NCBI RefSeq assembly: GCF_032062105.1
Contig: NW_026930547.1
Coordinates: 1-64,000, forward strand
Reading direction: 5' to 3'
Length of the DNA: 64,000 bases
From: Saccostrea cucullata
Taxonomy: Eukaryota
The position numbers and the translations under genes are program-made. Of the stretch, positions 8,201-50,487 are shown piece by piece. Numbering within the stretch: position 1 is the stretch's first letter; the number at the start of each line of letters is the position of its first letter. A model generated the notes under the pieces. It was not told where the DNA came from and made no database searches. It was given only the letters and a program-made list of their open reading frames with translations.

Positions 8201-11200
8201 TCATCAGAGCTCTACCCCTGGACTCTGTGTACTGACCCCCCAGGGCAAGGGCAGAGGTCGTCTGGGCTGTGTGGGATCCCAACACTTTTAAGTTCATATC
8301 TAGAAAAGAAAAAAAAAACATTTACACTGTAACATTAAAGCCATATTATATTATTTTTTTTATAAACAGAACATCTCTAATTAAGATGTTTGCTACAGAT
8401 ATAGTGGAGGTACATTTACAGTTGACACAAGAAGAGTGCATTTTACATTCATTCAATCAACTCTTATTTTTCACACTGTTTACTCTTTCTTTGAAGAGTA
8501 GAAAGGATATGTTTGTCATAATTTCCAAATGGAACTTTCCAGACTGTTCTTTTGATCTTCTTTCCCCAGAACTTACACTTGTTATATTATACAATTGTAA
8601 CACTATGTTTCTTTGACTCCTTTTCTCAAATTTAAGTTTCAATCAGAATCTTAAAGTACTGGAAAATATCCATGTTTTATTGCACATTCTATTAAAATGA
8701 TGGAGAAAATTGCTACAATACATAAAATCAAAAGCCTGAAAGGCTTCAATGGCGTCGAACAAGGAAAACAATTTCAAAAGATCTGCAAATAGGTCAAGTG
8801 AGTGACTCCGGTAACATAATAATAAAATCTAACACAAATACAGTATAGGGCCTGATAACGTTGTGTCCTGGTCCGAATGAGTCAGGGTTCGAATTGACCA
8901 GACATCGTCAGAAATGTCCATCCTCTATATCAATCTAATTTCTTTTCAGTCAATCGAAGACATACGAAGAGTTTCATAAATTATTTTAATTAATTGCCAT
9001 TGTCAGAGTGTTGTTCTGTTGTATAGTGATTGCATCTTAACTACAACCACGACTCTAATGTTACAAGTACGATCGACTTACGATAGGGCGCGGTAAACAA
9101 ATGGAGGAAATGGATAAATACAGTAATACTGGCATTACTGGTCAATATCGTACGTTGTTCGGCTAAAATTGGATTGACGATCCTAAAAGTAAAGCTAAGA
9201 TTAAGAAATTCATTCTTTATAGTCGTGTTGTATTCGTGTTTATTTTGTAATTATTTTACCGTATTTAAGATTGTTTGTATTATAGTAATCGTTCCCAAAA
9301 TGTGATTCATGTCATTCGACGCACCCTCTAGAAATTCATCCGCAAGAACCATAACGTTTTTCTTGCGTAAAAATTAAACATAATATCGTTGTTTTGTAGT
9401 AGTATTAATTGAAAATACAATTGATTTGATTTTATATTCAAGCTATTATTCATTGTGAACGTTTTAAAAGAAATTGGATTACAGCTGTTGTGATTTTCTA
9501 TTGCGGATGCATCCACTGACACGTGCGGTCGCGTAAACCTGACTGATCCCTAGATGACGATCGGGCAAGCCCGACGCCATAAAAAAATTAATAGCCATCT
9601 TGCACTAAAGCCATAACACTATGTTCTGTATAGATTATTTTGATATTGATTATCCCTGTATCTTACTTCTCTCTGCCTCCCGTCTGTCATACGTAATCGG
9701 ACGACTCTGTGTCAGCACCCTGAGAGCTGTGGCACCCTCGGTGTCCGTGTATTTGACCACCAGCTGGAAAGGTAACTCCTTAAGATCGTCCTGGTTTGTC
9801 TCCATGGCTTCCTCTTGTCTCCCTCCTTCTGCCTGTGGTTTCTTCTCACCTCCACTAGCTTCAATAAAACATCATAAGGCTAATCATCAAAGTTCAAAAA
9901 CTCAGAAAATTCAGTTTCTCAATGCTTAGTGTAACTTAATATCTATTTGTTTCTAGATTGTGACTTTCTTTTTGAGATGCACCATAACCCAAATGTGCAA
10001 CATGTTTAAAGAAAAAAAAATGCATTATTTGAATGACATTAAAATTCAATCTTGCAATAATGCCAGTATTTGTCTATTTTTAGAATCTCAGCTTCTTTGT
10101 TTGGCAAACTATACAATTTAAAAAATTTAGAGGTCACTGAATTTCAGGCAATGTTTCAGTATGGAAACCTCATTTTCAAATGACATAAACATGTGTTTGT
10201 GTAAGCATATACGTTTTGTAACAATTTGTAGCATTAGACTTCCTACCTTGCTCCCCCTGTCCTGATTCCTCTGGGATAACCGGGGCTTTTCCCTGATTTG
10301 TGTCAGACTGACAGCGGACTCCGTACTCGAATGTAACCTCAGTGCTAGCCGTCACGTTCCCAACATTTCTTACAACCTTGCTTGCCTCTGTTTCTTCATA
10401 ATAGAAAAAGCTAAAAAAAAAAAATACATTCAATTACATTACAAGTATAAATAAAGTGATTAAATAAAAGGGTAGAAACATATAACTTAATTCTTACAGT
10501 CGTTTATGGAGATGGCAGGTAGCTACCACATTTGTAGCAATGATCTGGTCCGCCAGAATGGTAGAAAATTCCTGAGTCAATTTTAATGGGTCAACTATGT
10601 TCACCTAAAATGTACAAATATTCAAAATTACAATATGCATATCTAATAACTTTTAAAATTGAGAGTAACTTAAATCATGCGTTTTACTAATTAGAGATGA
10701 GTACCTGCCCCCCTGTCATATCAGCTATCTTTCCCAGGTGAACCATTTTACAGTCAGTACCTTTGATACTGATAACTGACACAGCAACACTGAAAAACAA
10801 AACATTCATGACATTGAAAACAACAATCATAAATAAATACAATCTGTATTATCTAAAAAAAAAATTAATGATAAGTACAGATCCTTACATGATCTAAAGT
10901 TTAGTGTTTGTTTAATTCTTTATTTCTAGGATAATATTAAAATACAGAGTTGAGAGTAATACCTACCCCTTGTCTGCTGCCTCCTGTCCAATCCCTTCAT
11001 AAAACTGGGCCTCGTTATCCATCTCTTCTCCGTCAACGTCCAGACGACCTAGACCTACATTGGCTTTACCGTCAGTACAGATGATGACCTTTGACCCTGG
11101 GTGTTGTCCTGCCATTGTTGTCGCTATCAGTAAGGCGGGGCCTAATGCTGTAGCTCCTCCCTCTTCCAGGCTGTCAAAGCAATAGAAATTCAACAGTATG

Positions 11201-14200
11201 TACTTTCATAAGTATAGTTTTGTAACATACTTAATTTTTCTAATCATTTTCTTTGAAGTTATCATTTTTATTTAATCAATACATCAAAGTAAAATTACCT
11301 ATACTTTAAAAAGCTATGTCATGAAAGGAACTTAATGTAAATATGAAAGTTTCAGGTGCATTAACAAGGAGTTTGCAGAACAATTACAAACACTGAAAGC
11401 CTTACTCATATCTATTGGTAAGAGGAAAATATAACAGTAATCTAACTGTAATAAAACTTTAATTTTTATTCAATGAACTACTGTAAACCAACTTTTATTC
11501 GCGTGCGAGAAATTTTCGCAAATTTTGCGAAAGCCTAGTCATCATTTCTCGCCGTGAACTGGTCCTTTAAGTGTATGTGTCTATTAACAACAGATCCAAA
11601 AAGGCTTGATCGCGAAAATAAATAGTTGCGATCTAGTTTATCCGTGGTAAATACGAAATAAAGTCGTCGCGAAAAAATGTTGGGTTTACAGTATTTCATA
11701 TAATTTACATGAATATAGCACTTCTCAGTTATTTAAAATGTTGTTTTGCATACCCAAAAAGTTTATCCCCTAGAGTACCCCTGGATCCCTTGATAGCCCC
11801 TGGCATCTTGATCTCTGACCCTTTCTCCTTGAGGTCATTAGGTTTGGTCAGTTTGTCCCCAGCCACAGTGACAGGTGTCTCACTCCCATCTCCAATAATT
11901 GTTACCTACAACAGGTATACCAAGGTCACTTACAAATCTACTGTCTGCAAAACCCAAAAGTTACTAGTAAAGTATACAAAAATCTTCACAATTACTGTCA
12001 TGAAACAGCACAATTGGAAATACACTGTAATATGGTTTCCATTTCACAATCACGTTTCCAAACTTTAAAAGAAACTAACTAAAATATCAATCACTTGAAT
12101 CACAACACAATCTAAGTGTGTTACAATAAATAATTAGTCCTTGACCTCATTGTTGAAGGTGATGAGAGCCACTCGTCTGTTGGGGTGTTGTTTTCGCATT
12201 TCCTCCAGCTGGTGGTCGACGGCCGCCTGGACCGCCTGGAGACGCGACACGTACGTCACATTGCGTCGCTCGTTAGGCAGGTGCTGGTCCGATCGGTCAG
12301 TATTGAGAGACTGAAGTCTGGCCACTGATCCTCGAAGATTGATTCTACCTGGAACCTGGAAAGATGCCGATAAGTTAGAGTATTAACTCAGATAAACATG
12401 TTTATAATATTACTATAAAAGAAATTACATTTTGGCACTTTGAGAATAGTCTATGTCTCAAACTGAGAGTAAAAGCCTCTGTCCAAATTTAAAAAATAAA
12501 TATTCTATTTTTAAAAAAAAGGAAATTCCATTTACATATATTATCGTATGCAATATTAATATTATTTTCAAGATCTAAAATCAATAATAAAACAAGAACA
12601 AGATATCAGGTTTTAACAAAGTTAAAGATGAAATCTGAGGAGATTTTTAGAAAGCTTACTGTGGATGTGACACACATGCTTCCTGAGATGTCCACACAGA
12701 AAATGACCAGCGACTCATCTTTCCCGGACAGACTGCTGGACGCGGTGGACGGAGCCGGCTCTAACATGTAGGTCACGTCGTTAGAGCCCGGGATTTCCTC
12801 CTCCTCAATATCTAACTCATTCTCCGTACCACAAAACTCACAGACCCAGATCTGAAATATAAATTAGTGATAATTAAGAAAGCATTGTTAAAAGAAAATA
12901 TTACTTTCCTTTCTGGGTATTTTGTTCACTTCTTTAAGTTAAAATATGACTGATATAAATATTGATAAGAATATCTTACCAGCCATACTGAATTTTATCT
13001 TCACTTATCCCAATTCATATTCAAAAGAATGAACACTGCATCTTTAACTGTACTTGTACATACAAACATGTACATATCTTTGTTTTGGATCTTTTTATAT
13101 ATTTCATCAATATTCAAACTTTTGATTGGGACAATTGTAATTAGTTTTTACTTTCCAACCTTTTTATTTTCCTTGGAGGTAATTTTACTCAGACTGGACA
13201 GAATGACATCACAGGAAGTGCAATGTACGGGGTCACCAGTGTGCATGTTGCTAGGGGCGATGATCTTTTGAAAATCGATGGAGATTATGTTTGTATCTGC
13301 ACGGCGATGACGTTTTCCTTGCTGCTCACTTTCTGGTTTGTCTGTAGCATCTATATGATCAAGTATATATATTTAACAAATAGTACAGTTTGGTTTGTGT
13401 AAATCATGATGCATTCAAGGTCAATAAAAATCTTATTTATCTGATGGTGATTGTAAATAATTCATGAGTTAAATAATGTATTACTTATTAGGTTTTTCCA
13501 AAAAAAAAAAAAAACAACGGTATTGATACAAATTCCAAAATCTTTAAAAGTTTAGCAATTGGATAAAAAAGCAATGAACATAACAGTTTTATCTGAAAAA
13601 GTCTAAACTATCAAGTAAACTAAGTTTATGATATTCATACTTACAACTCTCCAGAGTGTCTCTCCATTTCCCAACTTTCTTTCCTCTTCTTTTTAATTTC
13701 TTTGATTTTTCAGCAGCAGGGGGTGTTGATTTTGCAGACCTTGCCCCAAAAAGTCCGGCAAATAATCCAGGTCTTGGAGCCTTAGGGGGTGGGGGAGGGG
13801 TAGGGGCTGGGGGAGAAGAAGGGGTCGAGGAGGGGCCAGCTCCCAGTGTAGGGGGAGAGCCTATGTAACAGAAAAACAAAACTTTGTAGAATCAACAAAT
13901 ACAATTTTCAAATGCAATTTACCACTTTATAAGAATTTAAACTTTTATTGATAGGATGATTAATTCAAGATTCATAGTGAAAAACAAAAAAATGGTAATG
14001 TATCTAAATTAAACATGATATATAATCTTCTTTATTGAAAAATACAGCCTTATATAATTTTTATTGAAAATTATGTCAGATATTTATTTTATCATCTTTA
14101 TGCTGAGTTCATGCTCAACTGTTTAAATAATTATAATCTTTCAGCTGCCCTTTTGATTATGTTTTATTTACTTCATCAGCAGTAAGCACAAAAACATAAT

Positions 14201-19483: not shown

Positions 19484-20310
19484 ATCAGGACCAGAAAAAA
19501 GAGAAAATATTTAGGTAAATATAAAAAAAAAATACAAACGCATTCTATGAAATATTCTGTTGTGTGAAAAAACAGACATTAATTTTTATTAACAAGATGG
19601 AAATCTACACTTGTAGCGTACTAAATAAATAATTTAATACTAAATTGGATTTTTGTAGAAAAAAAGAAACTTTTAAGTGGTAAACAATATAGCAAGATCA
19701 AAAACAAAGGTTATACACAGTTGTGCTGCCCTACTCCACGCAATATATCTTATTACTTATTTCTTTTGCCTGTCTTAGAGAATTTGTATAGTTTCTTTTT
19801 GTTTTCACCACTCCCCCAACTGAAATTTCTTCCTATATGAACTTGGACGGTCGTATATTAAGCACGAGGAAGAGAATAAATGTATGACAATCATAATATC
19901 AGCTGCGAAAATACTAACAGGGAAGCATTATCCGCCCTTCTGAATGAGAATGTTAATGATAAGGCGTAAAGACAATTATCCTTATTATTTTTTTGTCGAT
20001 TTATCCAGGCGTGAATGAATAAGAAATGAAAAAGAGAAGACAATTTTTACAAACGATGCAAATTTTCAGCGCTTCATTTATTTCCTCGATAACAATGTGT
20101 TATATTTAAAAGATAAATAACTCTTTGATATTAAATATAATGCATATATATGCATGGTCATTTAAGCGGAATTTCCCTATTGGCTTTAACACCATCTGCT
20201 TCAAACTGAAAGTAGGCTATCCAATATTTTATTTCCCTATAAGAATGGTAAATAAAAGAAATAACAGCAACAGCGCTGAGTAGCTAGAGGAGAAGATCTC
20301 TGCTAAAAGA

Positions 20311-22051
20311 ATGGAAGAAATTGAAGAAGAGAGACGCATTCATCAAAAGTCCACGCCCCCCGAAGACGGCAATGACTCTATAGATGATACCTCTCCTCTG
20401 ATTTCGCTGTCTTCAGATCATACAGAGTCGATGGGATGGGATGCGATAGAGGAGTGTGCCGGAGTAACTTCCCCTGTCCCTGCTGTGGGAGAAACGCAGG
20501 GACAAAGAAGACTGAAAAATGCTTTTGCGATTTCTGAGACATCGACAGAGGAGTGGATCCAACAGGCAGTGTCTGCAATACCACCATGTAAGTAAACTAT
20601 CATTATCGTATTAATATTTATATGTTTGAACATGCTTTGGTGTATATAACATTGTATTTGATATTGTAACTCAATAATTTTTGGGGCGCATATATTCGTA
20701 GTTGAAATATATAAAGATTGCTATATAACCCGATTCTATTTCGTTGTAAAAGAAAAATCATTCTGCAATTTAATTTCATGGGACTCTTCATCCCATGAAA
20801 ACAAATTTAATCCCCCAGATTATTGTTGATTTCAGGTATCCCTTCGTGTAATAGTCTTTTTCTTTAGGGAAGTGTACATACTTAGCCTTCTGCATCCCTA
20901 GTAAACTAGAATATGTCCACCAAAAATTAAAGAAAAGTATAAAAAATTGAAACATGTCCTTGAATTTTATGTTTTAACGATAAATCTTAAGTTCTGAGTT
21001 TTTATATCTAAAGAAACCTAGAAAACCGTTTCTTCCTATAGCATAAGTCAAAAAGTATAAAAGAACAACCAGTTTATGTAATTTTTTAAAGAGACTTTCT
21101 TTCCTCGTACAACTCAGTTTTAAAAACACTCTATACATGCCATATAAAAGCTAGTTCATGTTGTAGGTGATGTTTGCGATGTCTGTGAAAAGAGTTATCC
21201 ACATCATGAGTCTATTGAGTTCTGGAGGAGTGTTGAAGAATGCTCAGACATCCGTACACGATGTCACAAAAAGGTTGGAGTTTTGTACCATTCTGTTTTC
21301 TTTCTCGCGAATAACAAATCTATTTTTAATAAGATTCCAAGAATGTATTGTTTCCCCGTGGTCCATTGGAGGAAGAAGACCCACGTAGTATCATGGCCTT
21401 TGGTAGACTAGTACACAGATCATTCGATCCTACACGCGATATGATCAGGAAAAGAGATTATGCAACGACATATCATATTATTAAAATATTTAAAATTCAA
21501 AATAAGTTAAAAGAATAAATCTGTATTATAAGGTGGTTCCATGGTGTTTTTCTTTTCTTTAATCATTTAAAATAATAAGATTTAGCAATTTAAGTCTTGT
21601 TTTAAAAGCACAATGTCATGGTAACGAAGTGAGAATAAAAGTTCTTTTAAGAAATCGATACACTTGTAACGCTAAATTGTATTACACTAGTCAACTGTGC
21701 ATGTTATGGAATTATTTGCATATTTTGTAACATGGTAGTCCACTTTACTAAATCGTATTCACAACTGACAATTCAACTGATGGTAATGTTTATTTGGGTT
21801 TGTTTGTAGTTCTATAAAAGACTTATCCAGAGATTCCGGGAAGTTTTTCCGGAGGAGACCACTTTAAGAAACAAGCGAACAATGAATCTTCTGAAAAATT
21901 TACTACATATAGAGGGAACAGGTACTGTCGATAGTTATAAAGCATACATAGAAAGAACACTGCAAGTTAAGGTTATACACACATGTAGAGAGAACTGGTA
22001 CAACATGTAGTTAAAGATTGATTGATTGATTGTATATTGTTTAACGTCCCT

Positions 22052-22083
<32 letters not shown>

Positions 22084-25000
22084 TCGATGCCGGTGAAGGG
22101 CTTCAAATTTAGACCTATACTCGGCACTCAGGGTCATTGAGCAGTGAGGGTTCTTTATCGTGCCAACGCCTACCGTGATATGGGACCTACGTTTTTAAGG
22201 TCATATCCGAAAGATTCGTGACTTTCACTTCTAGTGCCGAGCGCTTAGCGAAGGAACAGTCACTACCTATGTTTACGTCTAAGGTATGACGCGGCGCCTT
22301 GAACGAGAATCGAACCCGGGCCTCCCGATCACGAAGCGAACGCACTACCACTAGGCTACAGTGGAGGGAATAGGTATTGATTAAAAAGCACACAAAGGGG
22401 GAATAGGTACTAGTTAAAGATCACACAGAGGGAATAGGTATTGCTTAAAGATCGGTATTGGTTAAAGATCACACATAAAGGGGATAGGTATTTGTTAAAC
22501 ATAACACATATAGGGAAAAGGTATTGGTTAAAGATCACACATAGATGAATGAGTAATAGTTAAATAACATTGAGGGAATAGGTATTGGTTAAAGATTACA
22601 CATAGAGGGAATAGGTACTAGATAAAGAACGTAGAGGGAATAGTTATTGGTTTAATATCGCACATAGAGGGAATAGGTGATGGTTAAAGATTACACAAAC
22701 AGGGAATAGGCATTAGTTAAAGATTATACATAGAGGGAATAGGTTCTACTTATAAAGCACTCATAAAGGAAATATACTAGTTAAAGAGCACCAAGTGGAG
22801 TGAAAGGATCGTTTAAAGATCACACATAAAAAGAATAGGTATCGGTTAAAGTTAACACATAGAGGGAATAGATATGGGTTAAAGTTTAGAGTATAAGTAT
22901 TGTTAATGTTTCTCTTATTGAAGATGACACAGTTGAGGTTCATTTTGACAAATTTGTCAGAGTCCTTAAATTCTTTGGGCCAGTGAAGCTTTCTGGACAG
23001 AGATGTATTCTACTAGAACAAGTAGGTACACTTGTACATAGTATGAAGTACACAAATGATTGACACCTTTTTCATGTATTTGTTATATGACGAATAAATC
23101 ACTCAAACATCTGTTGTTGTTGTTTTTTTATTTAGTTGCAGCTTTTAATAGATAAATCATTGAAAAACAATCAACGAAAAGAGAAAATAAGGTAAATTCA
23201 AATATATATTTTTTTTATTTTGTGCGAGGAATTGGTGTGATATTTTTAAATATTTCAAACATAAAAACATTACAATTAATTACATCCACTTGAAAAAATT
23301 ATATACATTTCCGTTATTTGAAAATATATTCACTGTATATATTCACAAAACTTTGTGTTTTGGAGTTTGAAGTAAGTGCTTTTGATAAGTGTAATTAATA
23401 CATTTTCCTGAATATCAATGTATACTTAGTTGGTTTGCTGGCGATATGTCAAGACAACAAGCAGAAAGCAAGTTAGACCCAGAACCTAATGGAACTTTTC
23501 TTATCAGGTAAATATTTATATATTTTCTAAAAATCTTAAAGGCTCATTTTTTTTCCTAACGCATTGAGCTTGTCTTTAAACGGAAGTAATTTGCTTTAAG
23601 TATAAATTACATATTATACATTGTATATTCAATGCCAGAAGTGTTTTGCTTTTTAATTTATCTACCGACTTAATATGAAAACAATGAAGTAAATAAATTA
23701 TCAAATACTAGTAGATGAGTAAAAAGTATTTTAAAACCCCACATTTTCGTATATTTTGAATAAATTATAAAATTTAAAAGAGATATTTTGTCTATAGCTT
23801 AAATAAGACATGACTTAGTTCTTTAAAATAAATCATTTTATATCATAAATCTCACTTTCCTTTGTCTTTTTATCAGAATGAGTCAAAACAACTCTGAACA
23901 TGGAGATTTTGTTTTGTCTGTTAAACAAGGCGATACTGTCCATCATATTGAGATCAAAGTAAGTGATAACTATAAGTAGTGATAAGAAATCAATTATTGA
24001 GAAAATAAGCGATAGTTAAGTATTTATGAAATACAATTAAATACATGTACATGTATGCCTTTGCAGCACGTAGATCTGTTGCTCTTACGTAGACATGAAA
24101 CTTTACTCGGTTTTCTTGAAAGGTTTCAATGGACTCTTTGAAGGGAGTGAAGTCCATACATACTTTTAAGGGGCTAAGACACAGATTTGAAGTGAATATT
24201 TTCTCAAGTTTTCTGTATATTAGCATGAATTATATGTTGCTCTAGCTCTTCACAAGATAATACAATTGTCAGTCCGTACACACCGAGTGAATCATTTATT
24301 CATGAATTCTGACGAAGATTATTAAGCAAAATACTTCTTAAAATCCAATATACTGTCTATTCTTCCGTTTTCACTCGATTACAAGGTGATAAAATAAATA
24401 GACTTTCTGAACAATATGGTAAAAGGTTCTATCTGAGACTTGTAATAATATCGTTTATATATAAGACTCATTATTATAACTTAATTTTTTAAGAAAATGA
24501 TTTAAATTGTACGTCTGAAAATCATACTTACATTCACAGTTCACTAAGGGATTATTAAAAAAACATATTTTAATCTTTAACGTTTTGAACATTCCAGTCA
24601 AGGAAGATGAGTTCGTTCTACCCTAGGTATGCGTCATAAAATCCTTACAAAGTTACTTTGTTGGTTCTAATAAGGACTTTTTACCATGCAACCGGCTTCT
24701 CTCATCACAAACATAATAACTGTAAAAGTAACTTTAAAGTAAAGTACATACTGATTATGCTACAATAACTTTTAAAAAGTACTTGTGCATACTGAGTATT
24801 CTATAATATATTCTAGAAGTGATGTAAATCAAATGTGGATTCTCAAAAATTACAAATAATTTTTAGAAAATACTTACGGCCTTCAAATTGTCATTCAGAT
24901 ATATATCAATGACGTTTCATCCACCTAAGATAATAACAACAAATACTAGTACTCATACACAGTTAAACTGATTGACAATCGAGATGACTTCAACTTTTTA

Positions 25001-25523
25001 ATCGTCAACTTTTCTAATTTATGTGGCAATATCCCGCTATCACCGGCATATAGTGTTTTTGTCTCCTCTCTTATTTGATAATAAAGAGAATGGTCTAAAA
25101 AACGATCACTTTCAAAACCGCGACGGGCTGCAAATAGATAAGTTGATATTGCAGGGTTTTCAACCCCCGACAGGAGATGCCAACTCCTCACTCTTTTCAA
25201 TATATATTAATTTATAAACAGTCATGTAAAACTTATGTGTGGTCTTAATCTTGTCACTGTTTTATAGTCGTAATTTGCTTCTTTTTTAGGGACAACCATT
25301 GAAAGCCTTTGCTCAACAGCCCTTTTCAAGTTGTTTGTTATTTAGAGAGAAAGAATACTCTTCACTAATAGACCTAGTTGAGGAACTAAAATATGACTCG
25401 ATAACGGTTACTGGAGAGGAGGATGGATCAGAGGAAACAGAGGTGTGGTGCAGCGCCATCTGTCCGGGACTTCCGCTAAATTCCGCCATTACAGGGTACA
25501 AAAGAACAAAGGCAAAGCAATGA
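20311..25523 (+). CDS. SH2-domain protein A (EF-hand-like linker + SH2 + terminal Tyr motif), ~347 aa, 8 exons
   Basis: Exons 20311-20587, 21167-21273, 21810-21921, 22924-23021, 23136-23191, 23430-23507, 23877-23958, 25290-25523 (all GT-AG, in frame). SH2: SWFAGDMSRQQAESKL...GTFLIRMS...DFVLSVK..DTVHHIEI...YSSLIDLVEEL. Ends ICPGLPLNSAITGYKRTKAKQ*. Confidence 0.9.
21905..22885. repeat. ~33-bp minisatellite (CACATAGAGGGAATAGGTATTGGTTAAAGATTA) starting at the exon 3 donor and interrupted by the SINE
   Basis: About 15 units at 22365-22885, plus degenerate units at 21905-22015 that overlap the exon end CATATAGAGGGAACAG|GTACTG. Confidence 0.85.
22016..22364 (-). mobile_element. tRNA-derived SINE (MetaSINE-like central domain) in intron 3 of SH2 gene A
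   Basis: Minus strand: A-box TAGCCTAGTGG, B-box GGTTCGATTCT, central GGTCCC...TGGCACGATAAAGAACCC block, 3' GGGACGTTAAAC and a (CAAT)n tail. Confidence 0.85.
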
Positions 25524-28500
25524 GAACTGTTGTTTAATTGAACTTTGGTTAATGTTAATTGTACTGTTGACTGTATTTTGGACTTTTAATTTGTTTTAAT
25601 TATTTGTTCTAGATAAAATGCTTTCGAATTTCAATGAATTGGTTTCTTTCTTTTATGTCTCAATATTCCGAATAGCCCTTGTTTTCACAATAACCTAGAA
25701 GTTATATAACCTTTCTTCGGTATTGAGCCTCAACATAATGATTTCTTTGTTAAAAATTAACTTTGGTTAAGTATAGTTAAACTATAGTATTTTATAGTTA
25801 ATTACTAAAAGTTAAAAACTATAGTTTTAGTTAATTACGTTCTGTAGGCTTATATTGAAATGACGTACTGTATTTCTCCTATTTTTCAATTAAATTCTTT
25901 TAAAAAAGAAGCAAACACATTATATGTGTATATATATTTTGAGACACGTACTTTAAGATTATGCTTTTGGGAGTTCATAAATAATTAAAATCATTAAAGT
26001 TCGTGCACATGGGCTAAAATCTCGTTAAACTATTTCAGTATTTGCATGTGTACACCTACGTGTATGTAGAAATAAAGAAAGTGGCGTTCTATAACACTTT
26101 TAAAACAGTTACTGCATGCAAGCTTTTCATAGATTTAAACAAGAGAGAAGCTTTTTCCGGATCTTAATACGATTTCCATTATTGGTTTTGAAATTACACA
26201 ATTTTAGTTTCAGTTTCGAATGCTTTGTAAGTTTGTTGTTGAATTGGATGGTTTTTCCAGTGATAATTTAAGAATAATTTCCTAAAATTGATGTTAATTT
26301 TCGATGAATGATCATTGATTTTGTTTGTTTTGATTATTTTTACGAGATGTTTGAAAGCTTTTACTCATAATGACATGGATTTAGGAATTGTCATCAATGG
26401 ATGAATCTTGCAAAATGCCACTTTAATGACAGTTTTAAAATGTAAGTGTTTTCTATTTTCAGCTTTATGTATCATGTCTCTATGCGTCTGTATTTGTATA
26501 ATTGAAAATGACACAAAATATGTACCATTACCGTTTTATTACCTTTTAGTATGGATGTATATTATACATGCAAAATATTGTAAACATCTACATAATTTAT
26601 ATATGTTTGTATGACTAACACATAAGAATAAAAGGGGGTGACTGGTTGTTTGTGCTTTATATTTATTTAATATATGCATGCATTTATGTATACGTGCTTG
26701 TTTGTATTGTCACAATTTTACTAATATGACACTGAGCACAAAATACGTTTATCATGTTTATTTACACGAGCATAAATAGACTTATAATTCATTTTAGTGA
26801 GGATGAATAGTTTCTTTAAAGTATATAGATTTTCCTGTTTGTATCCTGAAACGTAATTTAGTAAATAACACACTCCTTTGATGATTTTATAAACCTTTTA
26901 TTTTAGTCGTATCGAGGTGTTTGAATCCCCTTTTATGGAAAAAAAAATTTACTTCATTTTGGTCGAAGTTGTATGAATACACTTTCCGGTCTTTATATCC
27001 AATATTCTACATTTATGAAATATTTGAAAATTGAATGTTTTCGACGCTTATAAAGAAGACACATACGTGTTCGTGTATATGTACAGTTTAAAGCAATTTG
27101 TTCACTAACACACAAAAAAGAATAAGCCTTTAGTTATATGTTTATTGGTGTTTAGTCCCGTCTTTAATTAATTAAAGATTGAAAAAAACTTTAATCGACA
27201 AAAGTTCGCTATGATTTTTTCTCATAGTATGGCCAACTCTATCTAGATCTGCTATCTGTCCTCTTGACTGGGTATAAATGTCTGAGAAGAAGTATTTATT
27301 CATAAAGATAAATAACTATCTTATTAAATTAAATCATATATACGAAGATATACAAAGAGAAACTACAGAAGGCTTTAAAACTTGAGTTGTGTTTTAGACC
27401 AATGTCGACATATATTTCGAAATATATATTTACATACTGAGTTCAGCATATGTAATGCAACTGAAGACAAAACACTGATCATGAAAACCAAAGTGCGAAA
27501 GAAAAATGTATTCACTTTGCGTTTGCAGAGGTAATGTTAAAAAACAACAAACAATGTAAAAAAAAAAAAGAGCCACATCTTGAATAAACACAAAGACTTC
27601 ATATCTTTTACTATATTGCATTTATAAATGCTACATGTATTAAAAAAAAAAGATTAAAAACATTGGCATTGTGCCAACTTCATAATCATTATATAGTATA
27701 CATCTGTAAACAAGGATATTGATTGCAGTGAACAGGTTCTGTAATTGCATTATAACTAGTAAAATGGATTTCCTTCTTAACAATTTTTTTTTCTGAAAAG
27801 CATAGGTTAACACGGGTCAATTACTTCTCCTTTTGGTTTAAATAGATTTTGCAGTTTGAAAAATGACTACATGTATATGTGGTGCACGAAAACGAAACCA
27901 ATCAATGTGTCTTTATTAAGATTTCAGCATATTTCAGCATATAGGTAATGGCATATAGGTAATGGTATGAAAATCTGCATGACCTTTCTTCCTTAAAAAA
28001 AAAAAACAGATGTTAAAAATTGTATTTGTCCAGAAGGGAAGGGTAATCAATTTTTGTGAGAATCACAGTGGGGATTTAAAAAGTTATTTTTAAAATATTT
28101 TTTTGAGATATGACATATTTTTTACTTATTTCATGAAGCAACTTTTTATGAAATATAGACCTTGGTTAAAACTACAATGTACTAGACAAACTGCTGTAAT
28201 TGTGAAATTGTTAATTAAGATTATTAATAATTTTTTCTATTCATTTCTTTTAATATCCACGGAAAATGGTCAAATGGGTTTTGCTAAAAAAAAATATTAC
28301 TAATAATTCGGTATTCCTTCTTATCGGTTCTTATTCCTGTGAGAGAATTTGAACTTGCATGAAGCATTTCTAGAAAATAAATGAAATTGTATGTAAATAT
28401 GTAGGGATATCAAGCGCAGTACGATATATATAATTTTTCGATGTTGTAAGTATGATTTTATATCAGGTCATTAAACAGGATGGAGAACAAAATGAAAGTA

Positions 28501-28846
28501 AATTTGATAATGGAGATTTTTTTCATATTTGTTGTTTATTTTTAAAAAAATTAACATTTTGACACTATTTTGAAGAAAATATCATCAAGTGATTATCTCA
28601 TTCAGTAAACTTGGTTAAAATTAACTTCTTATACCAATGAAAAGGTCAGGTCAAAGTCATAGTGCATCTAGGGATAAAAATTGCTGTCGCAAATCATGGG
28701 GAGCCTCTTCTATTTCCATGTATCAACATTCATACCGTATTGAATCTAAAGTATAAAATAATTTCCTTTAAATAGAATATAAGAGTCAATTCATTGTTTT
28801 CTATGCCCTTCGTGTACATTTTTGTCTAATTTCCTATTGTAAAAGG

Positions 28847-29900
28847 CATAGGTGAAGATAACGAACACTAATCAATCTTAAAAAATATACGAAGTGTACA
28901 AATAAGTTTACTTGGAATAAAACGCATTCCTTGGAAAATTCTAGACGTGGGAGGTGGCAATAGGAGGTAAAGGGCGTATGCGTTGCCGTGAATCAGTTAT
29001 CCCGTCTGCAACCTCGAGATATTAATCAGTTAAACAAGAGATTCCATAGACAAATTCACTTTATATAATCCTAACATTTGGTATGTAACATATCACCAAA
29101 ATGCGACCCATTGTTATTATGTGTTTGCCAATAAATTTAATATAACGACAATAGAATTACCCGAATATTGATTTTAAGAGAAGTTTACGAAATCCCCGTA
29201 ACATCAACTTATCTATAAATTGTCTTCTTTGTTTAAAAAAATGGTCATTTTCAGGACATGTTCTTGAGCATTGAATAAGATAGGAGATGTAAACACCATA
29301 TGCAGGTAAATGAATATTATTATATTTATACAAAAGTAAGGAAAGATGATGATGATGAAAAAGCTGAAATTATCTCGTATAATATCATTATCACATTAAT
29401 TTGTATGTTGGTCCTTATCATCTAAAGTCAGCATAACATTCAAATATGCGTTAGACTCTGTGATGTCTTTTATTTCGAGCTTAAAGGGAAATGTGAATAT
29501 GGAGTCAACATATGAAGGGCACTATATGGAAGTAACTATTATATTGATTACATATTGAAATATATTTAAATGTAAAGATAAAACCACATAAAGTATTTCA
29601 ATCTTCTCATTTAGGATATTTTGGATGAATTCAGTCTGCTTCATAGGAATATCGAATAAAAGAGATGAAATGTTTCCGATCAGATTCTAAGATTTCTTTT
29701 TTTGGAAGACCAAAGACCACGTAGATCTTGTAAAGGAGGAACTCCAGCATTCTTTTAAACATCGATTTCAGTGTACTTTTTGTAGAATAAGAGTTATTTT
29801 TAATATAGCTATTTTGTAGATGACCAATCACAAGATTTAAAATTCCAAGGTTTCTTTTATTATTTATTGAGGGAGGTGTTGTCTAATGTCTATGATATCA
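28847..29900 (-). mobile_element. Highly decayed Penelope-like remnant
   Basis: Peptide remnants IGHLQNSY, KRMLEFLL..IYVVFG and YSYEAD match the 17.8-19.4 kb copy; shared 3' end GAAGATAACGAACA. Confidence 0.65.
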
Positions 29901-31316
29901 AACCGTCCACTACATTATTGATCGTAAAGAATAGAATTTTAAAAAATTAGATATTTTGACGCTAATGAAAAGAATGTTGATTTTAAAATTTCATAAGACT
30001 CTGGAGAATCTACATCTGATTTACGCTCCTTGTAGATTATGCTTAAACAGAGTGCTCTGAGTTTCTTTTTTACAAACAGTTTATTTTTATTTGGAGAGTA
30101 AAGATATGTGCTTGATAAAGCCTTTGCTGACCCCGGCAATGTTCCTGCTTTTAAAGTTTCTTTTGAATAACTTTGAGGAATCTCAAACTAACAAACAAAT
30201 AAAACTAATATTGGTTGACTTTAAAAAATTGGAAGATGGATTTGATGAATTACATCCTTAGAAGTGAACTGTGATAAAAGTTGGATTTTCAGGTGAAGAA
30301 TTTAAACTTTAACATTTAAAATACAGTTTTAAAGATAGGCGATACAGTCTTGAGCAGAGTGAATTGTGTGCTGACACCATAGCATATTATCTACATGTCT
30401 TTCCTATTCTTTTATCACTTTCAATTTAGTGAAAAAGAAAGGAACATTGTTAGTATATGATGAAGATTTCATATGCTGATACAAAATTAAATAAATGCCA
30501 AAAGAACTATTTTCAATTAAAAGAGACAATGTTAACAGCATTGACTGATTTTTCCATTGACAGATCCAAAATTATAAATACGATTGTTTGAAAAGATTAT
30601 TCTTCAAATATATTCCAGAATTTAAATACCTAGGACTGAATTTCAGTCATTTCAGTAAGTCTTTCAGTAGTTTGATTGCATGAAACGAAATGCACAATTC
30701 TAAACTTATAAATTTATAAAACAAAACATTGGAAAGTTTCTGATATTTTACATACCTGCTCTTGCAACAGAAATATAGTCCCTGCTGTTTTACCCACGGT
30801 GCCATTGCTTTTTCATGTTCCACAGTTACTCAAAGGGAATGCGTTCTTAATTATAAATGTTAATCATATTAATAATATACACTGGAATATTATTTTTAAT
30901 ATTTCAGTTAGTTAGACAGATGGTAAGAATGCTTCCTGGAAGCTCCTTTTTTTAAATCTAGCATAAATCATATAATCCTTGAATAATAGTTTATTTGTAT
31001 TTCTTAAAATGACAGAATACGTACATTAACTTTTCTTCTAAAATTTTCAGCTTTTAAATGACTTTAAGGTACTTATTTCATTTGTATTTTGTGAATTAGA
31101 CAAACAAGTACATGTAATCTTATTTTATTCTGAAATGTATACGTGTATTTTATAGTTTTTAGAATAATTTATCACTGTAAAAGTGTTTTTGTGTATGTTA
31201 TTTGTGTAAAAATTAAAATTTAATTATACTTTAAAACAAAATTTATTTTTCAGAAGTGCGACGATCAATTAAACAAACTAATTTTTTTCATCTTTGCCTT
31301 CACCTGTTCTTCTAAA

Positions 31317-34198
31317 ATGTGTGATCCACGTGAAAACAATGGTGCCAAGGTGGTTCATGAGTCAGTACCACAGAAAGACACACAGGGGCCAGGAGAGATA
31401 TTGGGTGAACCCAAAAGCATCAGCGAAATCAAAGAGAATTTATTCACTGCAACTCCAACTTGCAGTGATGGTGGTGCTGTAAACCTAGAAGCTCAGTCAG
31501 GTCATCAACCTACTGCTTCTCTTCCACAGCAAACGTATGCAGCAGACCTGAACTTGTCCACATCTTCCCAGGGTTTTTCTGTTCATGAACCGGTTGAAAA
31601 TGAAGAAAAAGGGAATACGAACGACCCCCAGAGAGAAAGAGCTCTTCTTTCTCGTACATCATCAAGGAGTTCGGGATATTCAGGATCTGTTGAGAATTTT
31701 CATGGCGAAAATACAGCTCCCCATGACCCATTAGTAATGCGACAAGCTTTTATTCAAAGGACGTCCAGCGGAAGTTTAAGCAGTAGCCTAACGTCTGAAG
31801 AAGCGAGACGACTCTTTGAACAAGGACTTCATATATCTGGATGTAAGGTTAACACTTAAGGCAAATTTGTACAATTTCTATGCAAAGTTCCCTTTTAAAA
31901 CATATTTGAAAAAAAAAACGTAAATTCTGATTTTGGGGTTGTATTGCCCGCAGGTGATAAGTGCAAGTTGTTAAGAGAAAAGTGTCCTTCTAAAGAATCA
32001 ATTGAATTCTGGGATGACGTCGAAATGTGCGGAGATGACGATAAAACCAAATGCCATAGTAAGGTAGGTTTGTTAATGTCTTTCATTAATTTTATAGACT
32101 CGGTTTCATTTCCTTATAATTCATGTCATGTAAAAAAAAAATTCTTTTACTGAGAAAAAGACATTGTATCAACTTTGTAAGCTAGCTACTCATCATTTTA
32201 GATTTGAAAATTCTATAATAAATTATTTCAGTTAAGTTCCAATTCAGTGAAAACTTTTTGAAGAGTTGATATGACTTAAAAGAAATTAAACTGCTCTCAT
32301 TTCAGTTCTGGAGCTATTTCTTTGCAAAGCTTAAAGAGAAATTTCCAAATGAAAAGGGACTAAACAGTAAACAGGCAGTGAATTTTCTCAAGACGTTGTT
32401 GAACGTGCCAAATGCGGGTAAGATTAGATGAACTTCGTGAAGCAATACATAGTTTTTCCTTATCCCTCTGTTTTTATCCAAAATTACTTGGAAGTAAAAT
32501 ATCGTTTAATTAATCTTATAAATTAAATATTGAAAATAAAGCAATTAGATTATTACTTGAACAGGTACTTAAGCACAGGAAGTTAATACAATATTCACTT
32601 ACCAGCAGGAGGTTTGATATAATGTTATTTAGGGCATTCCATGTAATAATACACATTAAAACTTCATTTGTTATACACACTTTTAGATGATGGAGAAATT
32701 ACACTCACGAATTTGGTTAAACTAATACGATTCTTTGGTCCATTTAAAAAGGATGGCGAAAACTGCATCATAATCGATCATGTAAGTAAAAAGTAAAAAA
32801 TTACTTTGATTATTTATATATTAATTGTTAGACAAAATACATTTTCAAATTTTAAATACACTTTGACAGTTAATACTTTTATTTATTCTCAATCGGGTTT
32901 TTTTCAGCTGAACGATATAGTGAAAAGATCCCTCGTAAAATCAGCAGACAAGAAGAAAATAAGGTAAATTTCAGTGATGTATATCTTTCGTTTTCTAGAA
33001 AGCATCAGGTCTTACAGTGCTGTTTTTCTTTCGATATTTACAAGTACTTATCCAATTACTTTATTATCATTTATTTTCATGGGGACAAATTTCCGTTGTT
33101 TGGGAAAAATGTGTACGGATTAAATTTCGTAGTTTAAGAAGACAGTGATACCATACTTTTAATTTTTTCTCATTTCTAAACTGGTAAACCATAAAATCCT
33201 GTATATTTCCGTACACTTTAAACAAAGGAAATAAACTCTCCACGAAAACTAGAGATTTAAAAGTACTTTTCAATTCATGAATTTAAGTTGTCAAATCATT
33301 CATATATAATAGTTGGTTTGCTGGTGACATGACTCGAGAGGATGCGGAGAAAATTCTAGAGAAACAGAAAAACAAGACCTATCTTTTAAGGTAAAGAATT
33401 CAGGTTCTTTTTAAATATGTTATGTTAGTATTCAGTGTTTGGAGAATTTGCAGTGATTCAAAAACAATTTTTAGAGAAAAATATTATTCAGCAGAGCTAT
33501 TCACAGTAGATGAGTCTTTTCCGTTTTGGTGATATTTCTTAAATGTTCATGTGACTCTTTGCAATACTATATGTTTGAGCGAGTTTTTATTCGTTTGTTT
33601 GACCTTTAGAATGAGTCAGAGTGGATCAGACGAAGGAAACTTTGTGGTATCTGTAAAGGATAAAGATGCAGTACATCATTTTGAAATTGAAGTAAGTAAA
33701 TATATTTAACGTCTCAAAATATCATAATTTACAATTCAGAATTATCAAGCATTGTGTTTTTTCATTTTTATAGTACTTTAATAAATGTTTTTAATTATAG
33801 AAATTTTTATTAAAACTAAAACCAATATTGTTCCAATTACACGCGATGATCTCTGTGTTGCATTATAGTAGTATTTTAATAACTTTTCATATCATTAGCA
33901 TTGTTTAAATGAAAAAACTAGTATTGTGTTGGTTTATTTAATTTCAAACATAAGTATATCAGTACTTCAATGTAAATGTTTTTATTTGAAGGGAGACCCT
34001 GAGGCCTCAAGTAAAAGTACTTCTTTGAATTGTCATCTGAAGTTTTTTGGCAAAATGTATGAAACCTTGCCAAGTGTGGTAGAAGACTTAAAATACAATG
34101 GTCTAAAAGATGAAGAGGATGACGAAGAAGTTCACTGCATCTACATATGTCCTGACCTACCATTCAACACGGTCATTACACCTTATAAACGTACATAG
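31317..34198 (+). CDS. SH2-domain protein B, tandem paralog of A, ~421 aa, 8 exons
   Basis: Exons 31317-31842, 31954-32063, 32306-32417, 32687-32781, 32908-32963, 33313-33390, 33610-33691, 33992-34198. Intron phases match gene A and exons 3, 5, 6, 7 have identical lengths (112, 56, 78, 82). SH2: SWFAGDMTREDAEKIL...TYLLRMS...FVVSVK...VHHFEI. Ends ICPDLPFNTVITPYKRT*. Confidence 0.9.
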
Positions 34199-35207
34199 TT
34201 CAATATACAGGTATATACTATGAAATTGTTTATTTTCTCGAAAGGGCAATTGTCGTTATTTTTATTGTATGAAAACACGCATGAATTTATGTTTATCTAC
34301 AAATTAAAATAAATTTAGTATATGCATATGACAACTTAGCAATTCTTTAATGACGAAATTTAATTATCATGAAACAATATATATTTGTAAAATTTGACCT
34401 TAAGAAAATAAGTGATTGTACAGTTTATTCTGACCCATCATTTAACTTGGACATGACCATACATTGTACAGTGTATCACTGTAGATCTTAATTTTACCTT
34501 CAAAGCAAATGTATCTTATAAACGTTAAAAATAGCAAATTACAAAAAAGGTTTTTTTTTCTAATGATTCTCTATATGCCTTTGCTGTTGCGGCAATTTCT
34601 TTATTGATGATTCAAAATTGGAATTAATTGATGTTGTCCATATTTACTATGGAATGTAAATATGCAAGTACAAATATATATGTTTATATGACAAGTAATC
34701 AATTATGTATCATTTTATTTGAATGTTAGTTCACTTCACAAAATGCTTGTAAATTATTATATCACTGTCTTGTTTAAATGAATTGATCCTGAAAAAATGA
34801 TCATGGATCAACATTTTTCATACAACCAAAAAAAATCATTTTCTACATATAACTGCACTCTTCTGTAAAAATTTGCTATATTCCTTATTCCAAAGTTGCA
34901 GTTACATGGATTCTTGGATCTCCTATTTACATTTACAATAAATACATGATGACTTGACGCTGATAGCGAAATGATTTTCATTCCTTGTGACTTTATTATA
35001 CAATGTAAATTAGAATACATGGCTGTGCAGTTGTGTCGTGTGATAGTGTTTGTGTACTAATTTTTTATTCCCTCTCAATCCTATATTTACCGTCCTTTTT
35101 ATTTTTTATTTAATGTTTTGTAGAGTCTTAGAACATCAGTATTTTATATTTATGAATCCTCTTAATTTTTTTTTTTTTACATGTGAACGAATTCAAAAGG
35201 AAAAATA

Positions 35208-50307: not shown

Positions 50308-50487
50308 NNNNNNNNNNNNNNNNNNNNNNNNNNNNNNNNNNNNNNNNNNNNNNNNNNNNNNNNNNNNNNNNNNNNNNNNNNNNNNNNNNNNNNNNNNNNN
50401 NNNNNNNNNNNNNNNNNNNNNNNNNNNNNNNNNNNNNNNNNNNNNNNNNNNNNNNNNNNNNNNNNNNNNNNNNNNNNNNNNNNNNNN
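50308..50487. other. Assembly gap (180 N)
   Basis: Run of N. Confidence 1.

Follow-up and report, generated by a model that had tools for sequence, protein, structure and literature searches.

The window analysed here, a 64,000-nucleotide stretch of Saccostrea cucullata genomic DNA (contig NW_026930547.1, positions 1-64,000; a low-GC, about 32%, animal contig), carries two neighbouring genes, A (20311-25523) and B (31317-34198), both on the + strand, which are probably functional tandem paralogs. They would belong to a small, as yet unnamed metazoan family whose members read phosphotyrosine as stand-alone proteins. The products of A and B would each comprise four parts: a disordered N-terminus, a helical EF-hand-like domain of ~125 residues, a canonical SH2 domain of the Src type, and an extension at the C-terminus that is structured and ends in an invariant tyrosine and basic residues. 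A preliminary description of the window had drawn attention to this pair as minimal EF-hand-SH2 proteins; its observation is confirmed and its interpretation partly supported.

Two intact genes with a common exon structure

The gene models were rebuilt after reading the three frames of the + strand over 20000-35000, with junctions set by GT-AG sites and phase. Gene A, with its ATG at 20311, has eight exons encoding 347 residues, and gene B, which begins 5.8 kb downstream and whose stop codon ends at 34198, has eight exons encoding 421 residues. In both models all introns are GT-AG, the open reading frames (ORFs) are intact and the sole stop codon is terminal. The spliced translation of gene A is identical to the NCBI 'uncharacterized protein LOC134228963' of S. 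cucullata (P0010). In both genes the reading frame passes from exon 4 to exon 6 only through an intervening 56-nt exon, which was found by local tblastn of a Saccostrea echinata protein (P0001) onto the window (gene A, 23136-23191) and whose equivalent was then seen in gene B (32908-32963). This exon had been passed over in the preliminary description, but the motifs given there for the common module (ESIEFW, FP, LKxLL, FFGP, SWFAGDM and FLIRMS/YLLRMS) are all present, and the module continues beyond them into a conserved C-terminal tail. Model B aligns to LOC134228963 with 41% identity over 282 residues (E 4e-66), and seven of seven introns occupy the same alignment columns and phases in gene A, gene B, the S. 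echinata ortholog and a scallop homolog; with this identity and all seven introns matching in column and phase, the similarity of A and B is far above chance. Their N-termini, 92 residues in A and 175 in B, are unlike each other except close to their ends, so that the tandem pair with a shared module and dissimilar N-termini stands as first described. Database domain searches for gene B were made exon by exon, its joined translation being used for local alignment only.

A canonical Src-type SH2 domain

SH2 (PF00017) is the only Pfam family above threshold in the gene A protein (residues 218-301, 56.2 bits against a cut-off of 21), and exons 6 and 7 of both genes match Pfam SH2 separately. Pfam scans of the gene A protein and of every gene B exon found no kinase, RING or DNA-binding family, in agreement with what had been claimed from the letters of the window. 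The phosphotyrosine-binding FLVR arginine (betaB5; FLIRMS in A, YLLRMS in B), also noted earlier as retained, is invariant in all family members and aligns with the arginine of the SHP2 FLVRES motif. When the family profile was compared with PDB sequences, SHP2 was the best match, followed by SYK, p85 and VAV (E 1e-16 to 1e-12), with the betaD histidine aligned, and the AlphaFold2 model of the module superposes on SHP2 with Z 14.4 and a root mean square deviation (rmsd) of 1.8 over 99 residues (33% identity). SHP2/SHP1, SYK, p85 and VAV thus provide the closest SH2 domains (E 1e-16, Z 12-14, 33% identity), with the FLVR arginine and betaD histidine in common; the proteins that contain them differ from the oyster proteins in having phosphatase, kinase, GEF or other domains and in lacking an EF-hand before the SH2.

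SH2 domains of the Src type are distinguished from those of the STAT type by the presence of betaE and betaF strands and a single alphaB helix (PMC12470777). In our AlphaFold2 model two short strands (201-203 and 206-208) lie between betaD and alphaB, and alphaB is a single helix, so by this definition the SH2 domain of genes A and B is predicted to be Src-type and not STAT-type. Its best sequence and structural matches are likewise all SH2 domains of the Src type, and it is not Cbl-type.

An EF-hand-like domain predicted before the SH2

At the sequence level the ~125 residues preceding the SH2 domain belong to no recognised family. They match no Cbl_N2, STAT_linker or EF-hand Pfam family at E 10; the single pre-SH2 exons gave no match to Pfam or PDB sequences, and a profile of the region reached E of about 0.2 at best against PDB sequences, one of these matches being an EF-hand flagellar protein. 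Run against all six frames of the genome, Cbl_N2 found the real Cbl gene (C22872:1155947-1162597, 69 bits) and not the window, even at E 10; STAT_linker (PF21354), run likewise, found only the true STAT gene (C12615:310799-310945, 51 bits) and, again, not the window. These two genes can serve as internal references in comparisons. A search with protein-language features gave no usable match for the pre-SH2 part, and for the module only generic SH2 clusters below 0.9. Direct comparison of the pre-SH2 profile with the oyster's own Cbl EF-hand exon by hhalign set LKNLL..FDKF on LKSTIDL..FDVF over 22 columns. This is the register given in the preliminary description, but the match has a probability of only about 1%.

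AlphaFold2 modelled the module (residues 86-347, from a 9-sequence alignment) with a mean predicted local distance difference test score (pLDDT) of 74.6 and a predicted TM-score (pTM) of 0.75. Whole-module shape searches with Foldseek and ESM Atlas returned SH2 proteins only; because the SH2 dominates such searches, the pre-SH2 domain was also folded alone (residues 92-216), giving a model with pLDDT 81 in which two helix-loop-short strand-helix units are followed by a long helix. The alignments behind these AlphaFold2 models are shallow, at 6-9 sequences; the paired helix-loop-helix fold is present in both the AlphaFold2 and the ESMFold predictions. Comparison of the pre-SH2 model with 48,161 PDB representatives using VIA-align placed the CBL TKB domain (6xar_A) first, with Z 8.7 over 103 residues at 18% identity. 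It was the only match with Z >= 8, and was followed by the Dcn1 PONY domains (Z 6.3-7.2) and then by calmodulin, S100 and other EF-hand proteins. Foldseek likewise put c-Cbl chains at ranks 1-3, weakly (E about 0.6, probability 0.72-0.77), and the ESM Atlas ESMFold model of residues 92-216 was nearest to the CBL and CBL-C clusters (TM 0.52 and 0.55), then to tescalcin. When the whole module is overlaid on the Cbl EF-hand and SH2 domains, 164 residues align (model 9-245 on Cbl 175-343, Z 11.2, rmsd 4.2). The Cbl TKB domain is the only PDB entry aligned across both domains of the module, SH2 matches dominating otherwise.

The Cbl TKB EF-hand is therefore the top match by two predictors and three search methods, and the proposal of a Cbl-like EF-hand holds to this extent: an EF-hand-like domain packed on the SH2 in the Cbl manner is well supported as a prediction. 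Sequence searches found no homology to Cbl_N2 or STAT_linker, and homology of the pre-SH2 domain to Cbl is not established. One could instead regard A and B as SH2 adaptors of an ordinary, lineage-restricted kind, extended at the N-terminus by helices of no particular type, whose likeness to EF-hands and Cbl reflects an artefact of modelling or a widespread arrangement of helices and says nothing about evolution or mechanism. A Z of 8.7 is barely above the best Z of 7-8 that, by the tool's own note, is typical of models without a true match, and the Foldseek E of about 0.6, the lack of sequence support and the 6-9 sequences available for folding are all in keeping with this explanation. We nevertheless consider it unlikely, as AlphaFold2 and ESMFold agree on the top family across three libraries, the next matches (Dcn1 PONY, calmodulin, S100, tescalcin) are all EF-hand folds, and the two-domain overlay on Cbl spans 164 residues.

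The resemblance to Cbl raises the converse explanation, that A and B are truncated Cbl paralogs, copies of the TKB domain in which the four-helix bundle, linker helix and RING have been lost and which compete with Cbl in a dominant-negative manner. The pre-SH2 fold is indeed nearest to the Cbl EF-hand, the order of EF-hand then SH2 is identical, and in the hhalign alignment the second loop coincides in register with the Ca2+ loop of Cbl. In the TKB domain of Cbl (four-helix bundle, EF-hand and SH2; PDB 6xar, 1b47) the EF-hand directly precedes the SH2, an arrangement and a packing that are predicted in the oyster family too. The family, however, lacks the four-helix bundle (no Cbl_N match), the linker helix and the RING. 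Pfam SH2 detects its SH2 at 56 bits; the domain is canonical, with 33% identity to SHP2, in contrast to the cryptic SH2 of Cbl, which forms a family of its own (Cbl_N3), and Cbl_N2 misses the window at E 10 yet finds the real Cbl gene. The introns also differ at the positions checked: one intron of the Cbl EF region (after FTR) is not in the family, and the loop intron of the family is not in the Cbl exon. Together with the occurrence of this architecture already in a jellyfish, these differences make derivation of A and B from Cbl very unlikely.

The oyster family does not keep the pattern of Ca2+ ligands found in the Cbl loop. In the family alignment no register of the canonical ligands (DxDxDG ... 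E at position 12) fits all of A, B, scallop and jellyfish, and the loop residues vary among these four. Since the loops have no conserved Ca2+ ligands, calcium sensing is improbable, and to judge from the sequences the EF-hand-like domain probably has a structural role.

All bivalve members also have a CxxC motif at the exon 1/2 junction, its first cysteine codon split by the intron, and a Cys-His pair ~30 residues further on, both absent in the jellyfish members. In gene A these lie at 20585-20587 and 21167-21177 (CxxC) and 21262-21267 (Cys-His), and in gene B at 31840-31842 and 31954-31964 (CxxC) and 32052-32057 (Cys-His), all on the + strand. Together they may form a site for zinc by which the first EF loop is held to the N-terminal helix.

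A conserved tail with an invariant tyrosine

After alphaB, all members including those of jellyfish have an acidic spacer of varying length and then the invariant motif CPxLPxN-x4-YK[KR]. The protein ends ~45 residues beyond the SH2, without a RING. The first part of the tail is structured in the AlphaFold2 model (strands and a helix, pLDDT 73-82), and the tyrosine (Y340 in A) is located where confidence falls, ~37 residues past alphaB at the start of the presumably flexible end of the model, followed by lysine or arginine. This tyrosine may be a phosphorylation or docking site, or merely a structural residue.

An invariant tyrosine at this position, next to Lys/Arg and in a presumably flexible end, is what would be expected if A and B were STAT-like minimal transducers, in which the phosphorylated tail tyrosine is bound reciprocally by the SH2 domains of a dimer and the basic tail drives relocalisation. 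The preliminary description had compared the pre-SH2 region with the STAT linker-SH2 unit, and the two do share a helical domain directly before the SH2 and a conserved tyrosine shortly after it. The comparison fails on other grounds: the SH2 is Src-type, with betaE/betaF-like strands, and not STAT-type as defined in PMC12470777; STAT_linker matches only the true STAT gene; the Pfam scans show no STAT family; no STAT chain is among the top 50 structural matches of either model (module or pre-SH2); and there is no DNA-binding or coiled-coil domain. A STAT-like mechanism is accordingly quite unlikely. Prediction of a homodimer from two copies of residues 86-347 gave a score of 0.00, which is evidence neither way.

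Family members, transcripts and age

The last exon of gene A (25290-25520), searched against 1.84 billion representatives, identified the 345-residue S. echinata protein (P0001), which is 86% identical. Two longer proteins from the same search (P0004 and P0005, 2069 and 990 residues) were set aside, their match apparently being confined to the acidic low-complexity spacer. The Crassostrea/Magallana gigas ortholog cluster is annotated in UniProt as 'SH2 domain-containing protein' (LOC105327567), and a 351-residue protein of this cluster occurs in 103 blocks of the run-assembly (Logan) collection. Four contigs from this collection (L003-L006, 2.1-2.3 kb) contain the 351-residue ORF without interruption, and are read as spliced mRNA on that account. 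In-frame stops lie just upstream of the ATG, three of the four contigs have a 3' untranslated region of 0.9-1.2 kb, and no kinase or RING is joined to the ORF. The family proteins therefore stand alone, as had been supposed.

Between gene A and its S. echinata ortholog the ratio of non-synonymous to synonymous substitution rates (dN/dS) is 0.13 overall, 0.16 in the N-terminus and 0.12 in the module, showing purifying selection. A pseudogene or annotation artefact is ruled out by the intact ORFs, the canonical splice sites, the dN/dS of 0.13 and the complete mRNA contigs in a related oyster.

Further members with this module are a 419-residue scallop protein (Ylistrum balloti, P0006), a pearl-oyster (Pinctada) fragment, P0054 (a related JGI protein) and proteins of 533 and 534 residues from the jellyfish Rhopilema esculentum (P0013/P0053), which are about 32% identical and have ~290 extra N-terminal residues. 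Three introns of the jellyfish gene fall at the exact bivalve column and phase, and another two, in loop regions, agree in phase and lie within 2-4 columns of their bivalve counterparts; the SH2 and tail are encoded by a single exon. The introns common to jellyfish and bivalves argue for descent from before the cnidarian-bilaterian split rather than contamination, and on this comparison of sequences the family, present in bivalves and a scyphozoan jellyfish, is old, in line with the ancient origin first suggested. In the R. esculentum homolog (L011:1501-13204, SWAQ01001658.1) the ~290 extra residues are encoded by nine extra exons and match no Pfam family, and a 788-residue protein-kinase gene lies ~1.5 kb upstream on the opposite strand.

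The family was not recognised as a named animal gene in the preliminary description, and this still applies: every source calls its members 'uncharacterized' or 'SH2 domain-containing' only, no mention of five family locus names was found in the literature searched, and nor was any paper linking an EF-hand-SH2 protein to oysters.

Putative function and significance

The SH2 domain would bind a phosphotyrosine of a receptor or kinase substrate, and the EF-hand-like domain, predicted to pack on it like the EF-hand of the Cbl TKB domain, could buttress the SH2 or widen its binding surface. With no catalytic domain, the proteins might act as adaptors, docking through the disordered N-terminus and the tail tyrosine, or as competitive blockers in the manner of SAP (SH2D1A) and EAT-2 (SH2D1B). 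These provide the nearest functional analogy, being small and without a catalytic domain, with one SH2 and a short C-terminal tail; the tail tyrosines of EAT-2 are functional. Unlike the oyster proteins, they have neither an EF-hand-like domain nor a long disordered N-terminus, and the structural match to SAP is weaker (Z 10.4, 13% identity). An adaptor role appears most likely, and both this and the dominant-negative decoy role put forward in the preliminary description are inference only.

Several points weigh against the reading of A and B as functional tandem phosphotyrosine readers with an EF-hand-like domain. The EF-hand assignment comes from structure predictions whose matches score modestly (Z 8.7, Foldseek E about 0.6), and by sequence the pre-SH2 region matches no EF-hand or Cbl family significantly. 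Basic residues such as those after the tail tyrosine are unusual in SH2 ligands. No RNA run is listed for 24300-34299, though some may exist, and transcript support from S. cucullata is lacking for A and B; for gene B there is, in addition, no transcript or database protein to serve as a reference. Finally, the taxonomic range is probably under-sampled: the word-indexed protein search returned few members and missed the scallop protein that was present in the query alignment, so its short lists say little on range.

To our knowledge, an EF-hand-SH2 unit in animals is known only within Cbl, whose SH2 is too diverged for sequence profiles. SH2 proteins are among the best-catalogued signalling families, the catalogues being based mainly on vertebrates and model organisms. 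It is conceivable, if rather doubtful, that the unit exists as an independent family with a canonical SH2 that predates the cnidarian-bilaterian split, and is the surviving sister or ancestral form of the Cbl TKB core. If so, it would link the SH2 embedded in Cbl to ordinary SH2 domains, and would constitute a new class of phosphotyrosine readers without a catalytic domain in invertebrate signalling. Combining a Cbl-like architecture, purifying selection and introns shared by jellyfish and bivalves, the family may fill a gap in the known history of phosphotyrosine signalling, and at about 260 residues without an enzyme domain the module offers a simple, testable system for what an EF-hand does for an SH2. 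Oyster genomes encode many expanded tyrosine-motif receptors, and the family is a candidate adaptor or brake in the pathways of these receptors. The family would gain in interest if a specific role in signalling, or homology to the Cbl TKB core, were demonstrated.

Exon layout of genes A and B

All exons lie on the + strand. In gene A, exon 1 (20311-20587) contains the start codon and an acidic, Ser-rich N-terminus of ~92 residues with no Pfam match (dN/dS 0.16 against S. echinata), and ends in phase 1 within the first cysteine codon of CxxC. Exon 2 (21167-21273; CxxC, ESIEFW, CH) would encode the N-terminal helices and first loop of the EF-hand-like domain, exon 3 (21810-21921; FP..LLKNLL), which ends in phase 1 within the second loop, the helices of the EF-hand-like pair, and exon 4 (22924-23021; FDKF..FFGP..C) the second loop, the short strand in it and the helix that leaves it. 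The 56-nt exon 5 (23136-23191) supplies a connecting helix ending in KEKI and restores the frame between exons 4 and 6. The SH2 is divided between exon 6 (23430-23507; N-terminal part, WFAGDM..FLIR with the FLVR arginine, Pfam SH2 27.3 bits), exon 7 (23877-23958; central strands, MSQ..VHHIEIK with the betaD histidine, 19 bits) and exon 8 (25290-25523), which encodes its C-terminal half including alphaB, the acidic spacer, the tail CPGLPLN..GYKRT and the stop.

Gene B follows the same plan. Exon 1 (31317-31842) holds the start codon and a low-complexity N-terminus of ~175 residues, unlike that of A except near its end. It is followed by exon 2 (31954-32063; CxxC, ESIEFW, CH), exon 3 (32306-32417; EF-hand-like helices, FP..FLKTLL), exon 4 (32687-32781; second loop and exiting helix, ..FFGP..C) and the 56-nt exon 5 (32908-32963; connecting helix ending in KKKI). 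The SH2 begins in exon 6 (33313-33390; N-terminal part, WFAGDM..YLLR, Pfam SH2 20.3 bits), continues in exon 7 (33610-33691; central strands, 18.6 bits) and is completed in exon 8 (33992-34198), together with the acidic spacer, the tail CPDLPFN..PYKRT and the stop.

Paralogs and genomic neighbourhood

A third, B-like paralog with the same exon set (gene C) is present elsewhere in the S. cucullata assembly in two copies, at C10588:2700-7127 and C17242:35500-41435, which share 87-95% DNA identity and are either haplotigs or a very recent duplicate. The gene C protein ends directly after the tail YK. In S. echinata, the 10 kb downstream of the gene A ortholog (L013:19350-29349) yielded no B-like exons. 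On the other side of gene A, at about 10900-13900 on the minus strand, lies a Sec23/24-like or VWA-type gene, in which the ORF at 10963-11193 reads as a VWA core; in S. echinata a gene encoding 778 residues, with faint Sec23/24 and VWA matches, occupies the same position relative to the ortholog (L013:1-3965), and for this reason the upstream side looks syntenic between the two species.

Downstream of gene B, inspection by eye suggests a TRIM-like gene, a single-exon ORF of 283 residues with B-box-like Cys/His spacing and a coiled coil (42238-43089, + strand), and exons resembling a short-chain dehydrogenase (46727-47691, minus strand). Runs of N occur in the window at 48089-48218 and 50308-50487.

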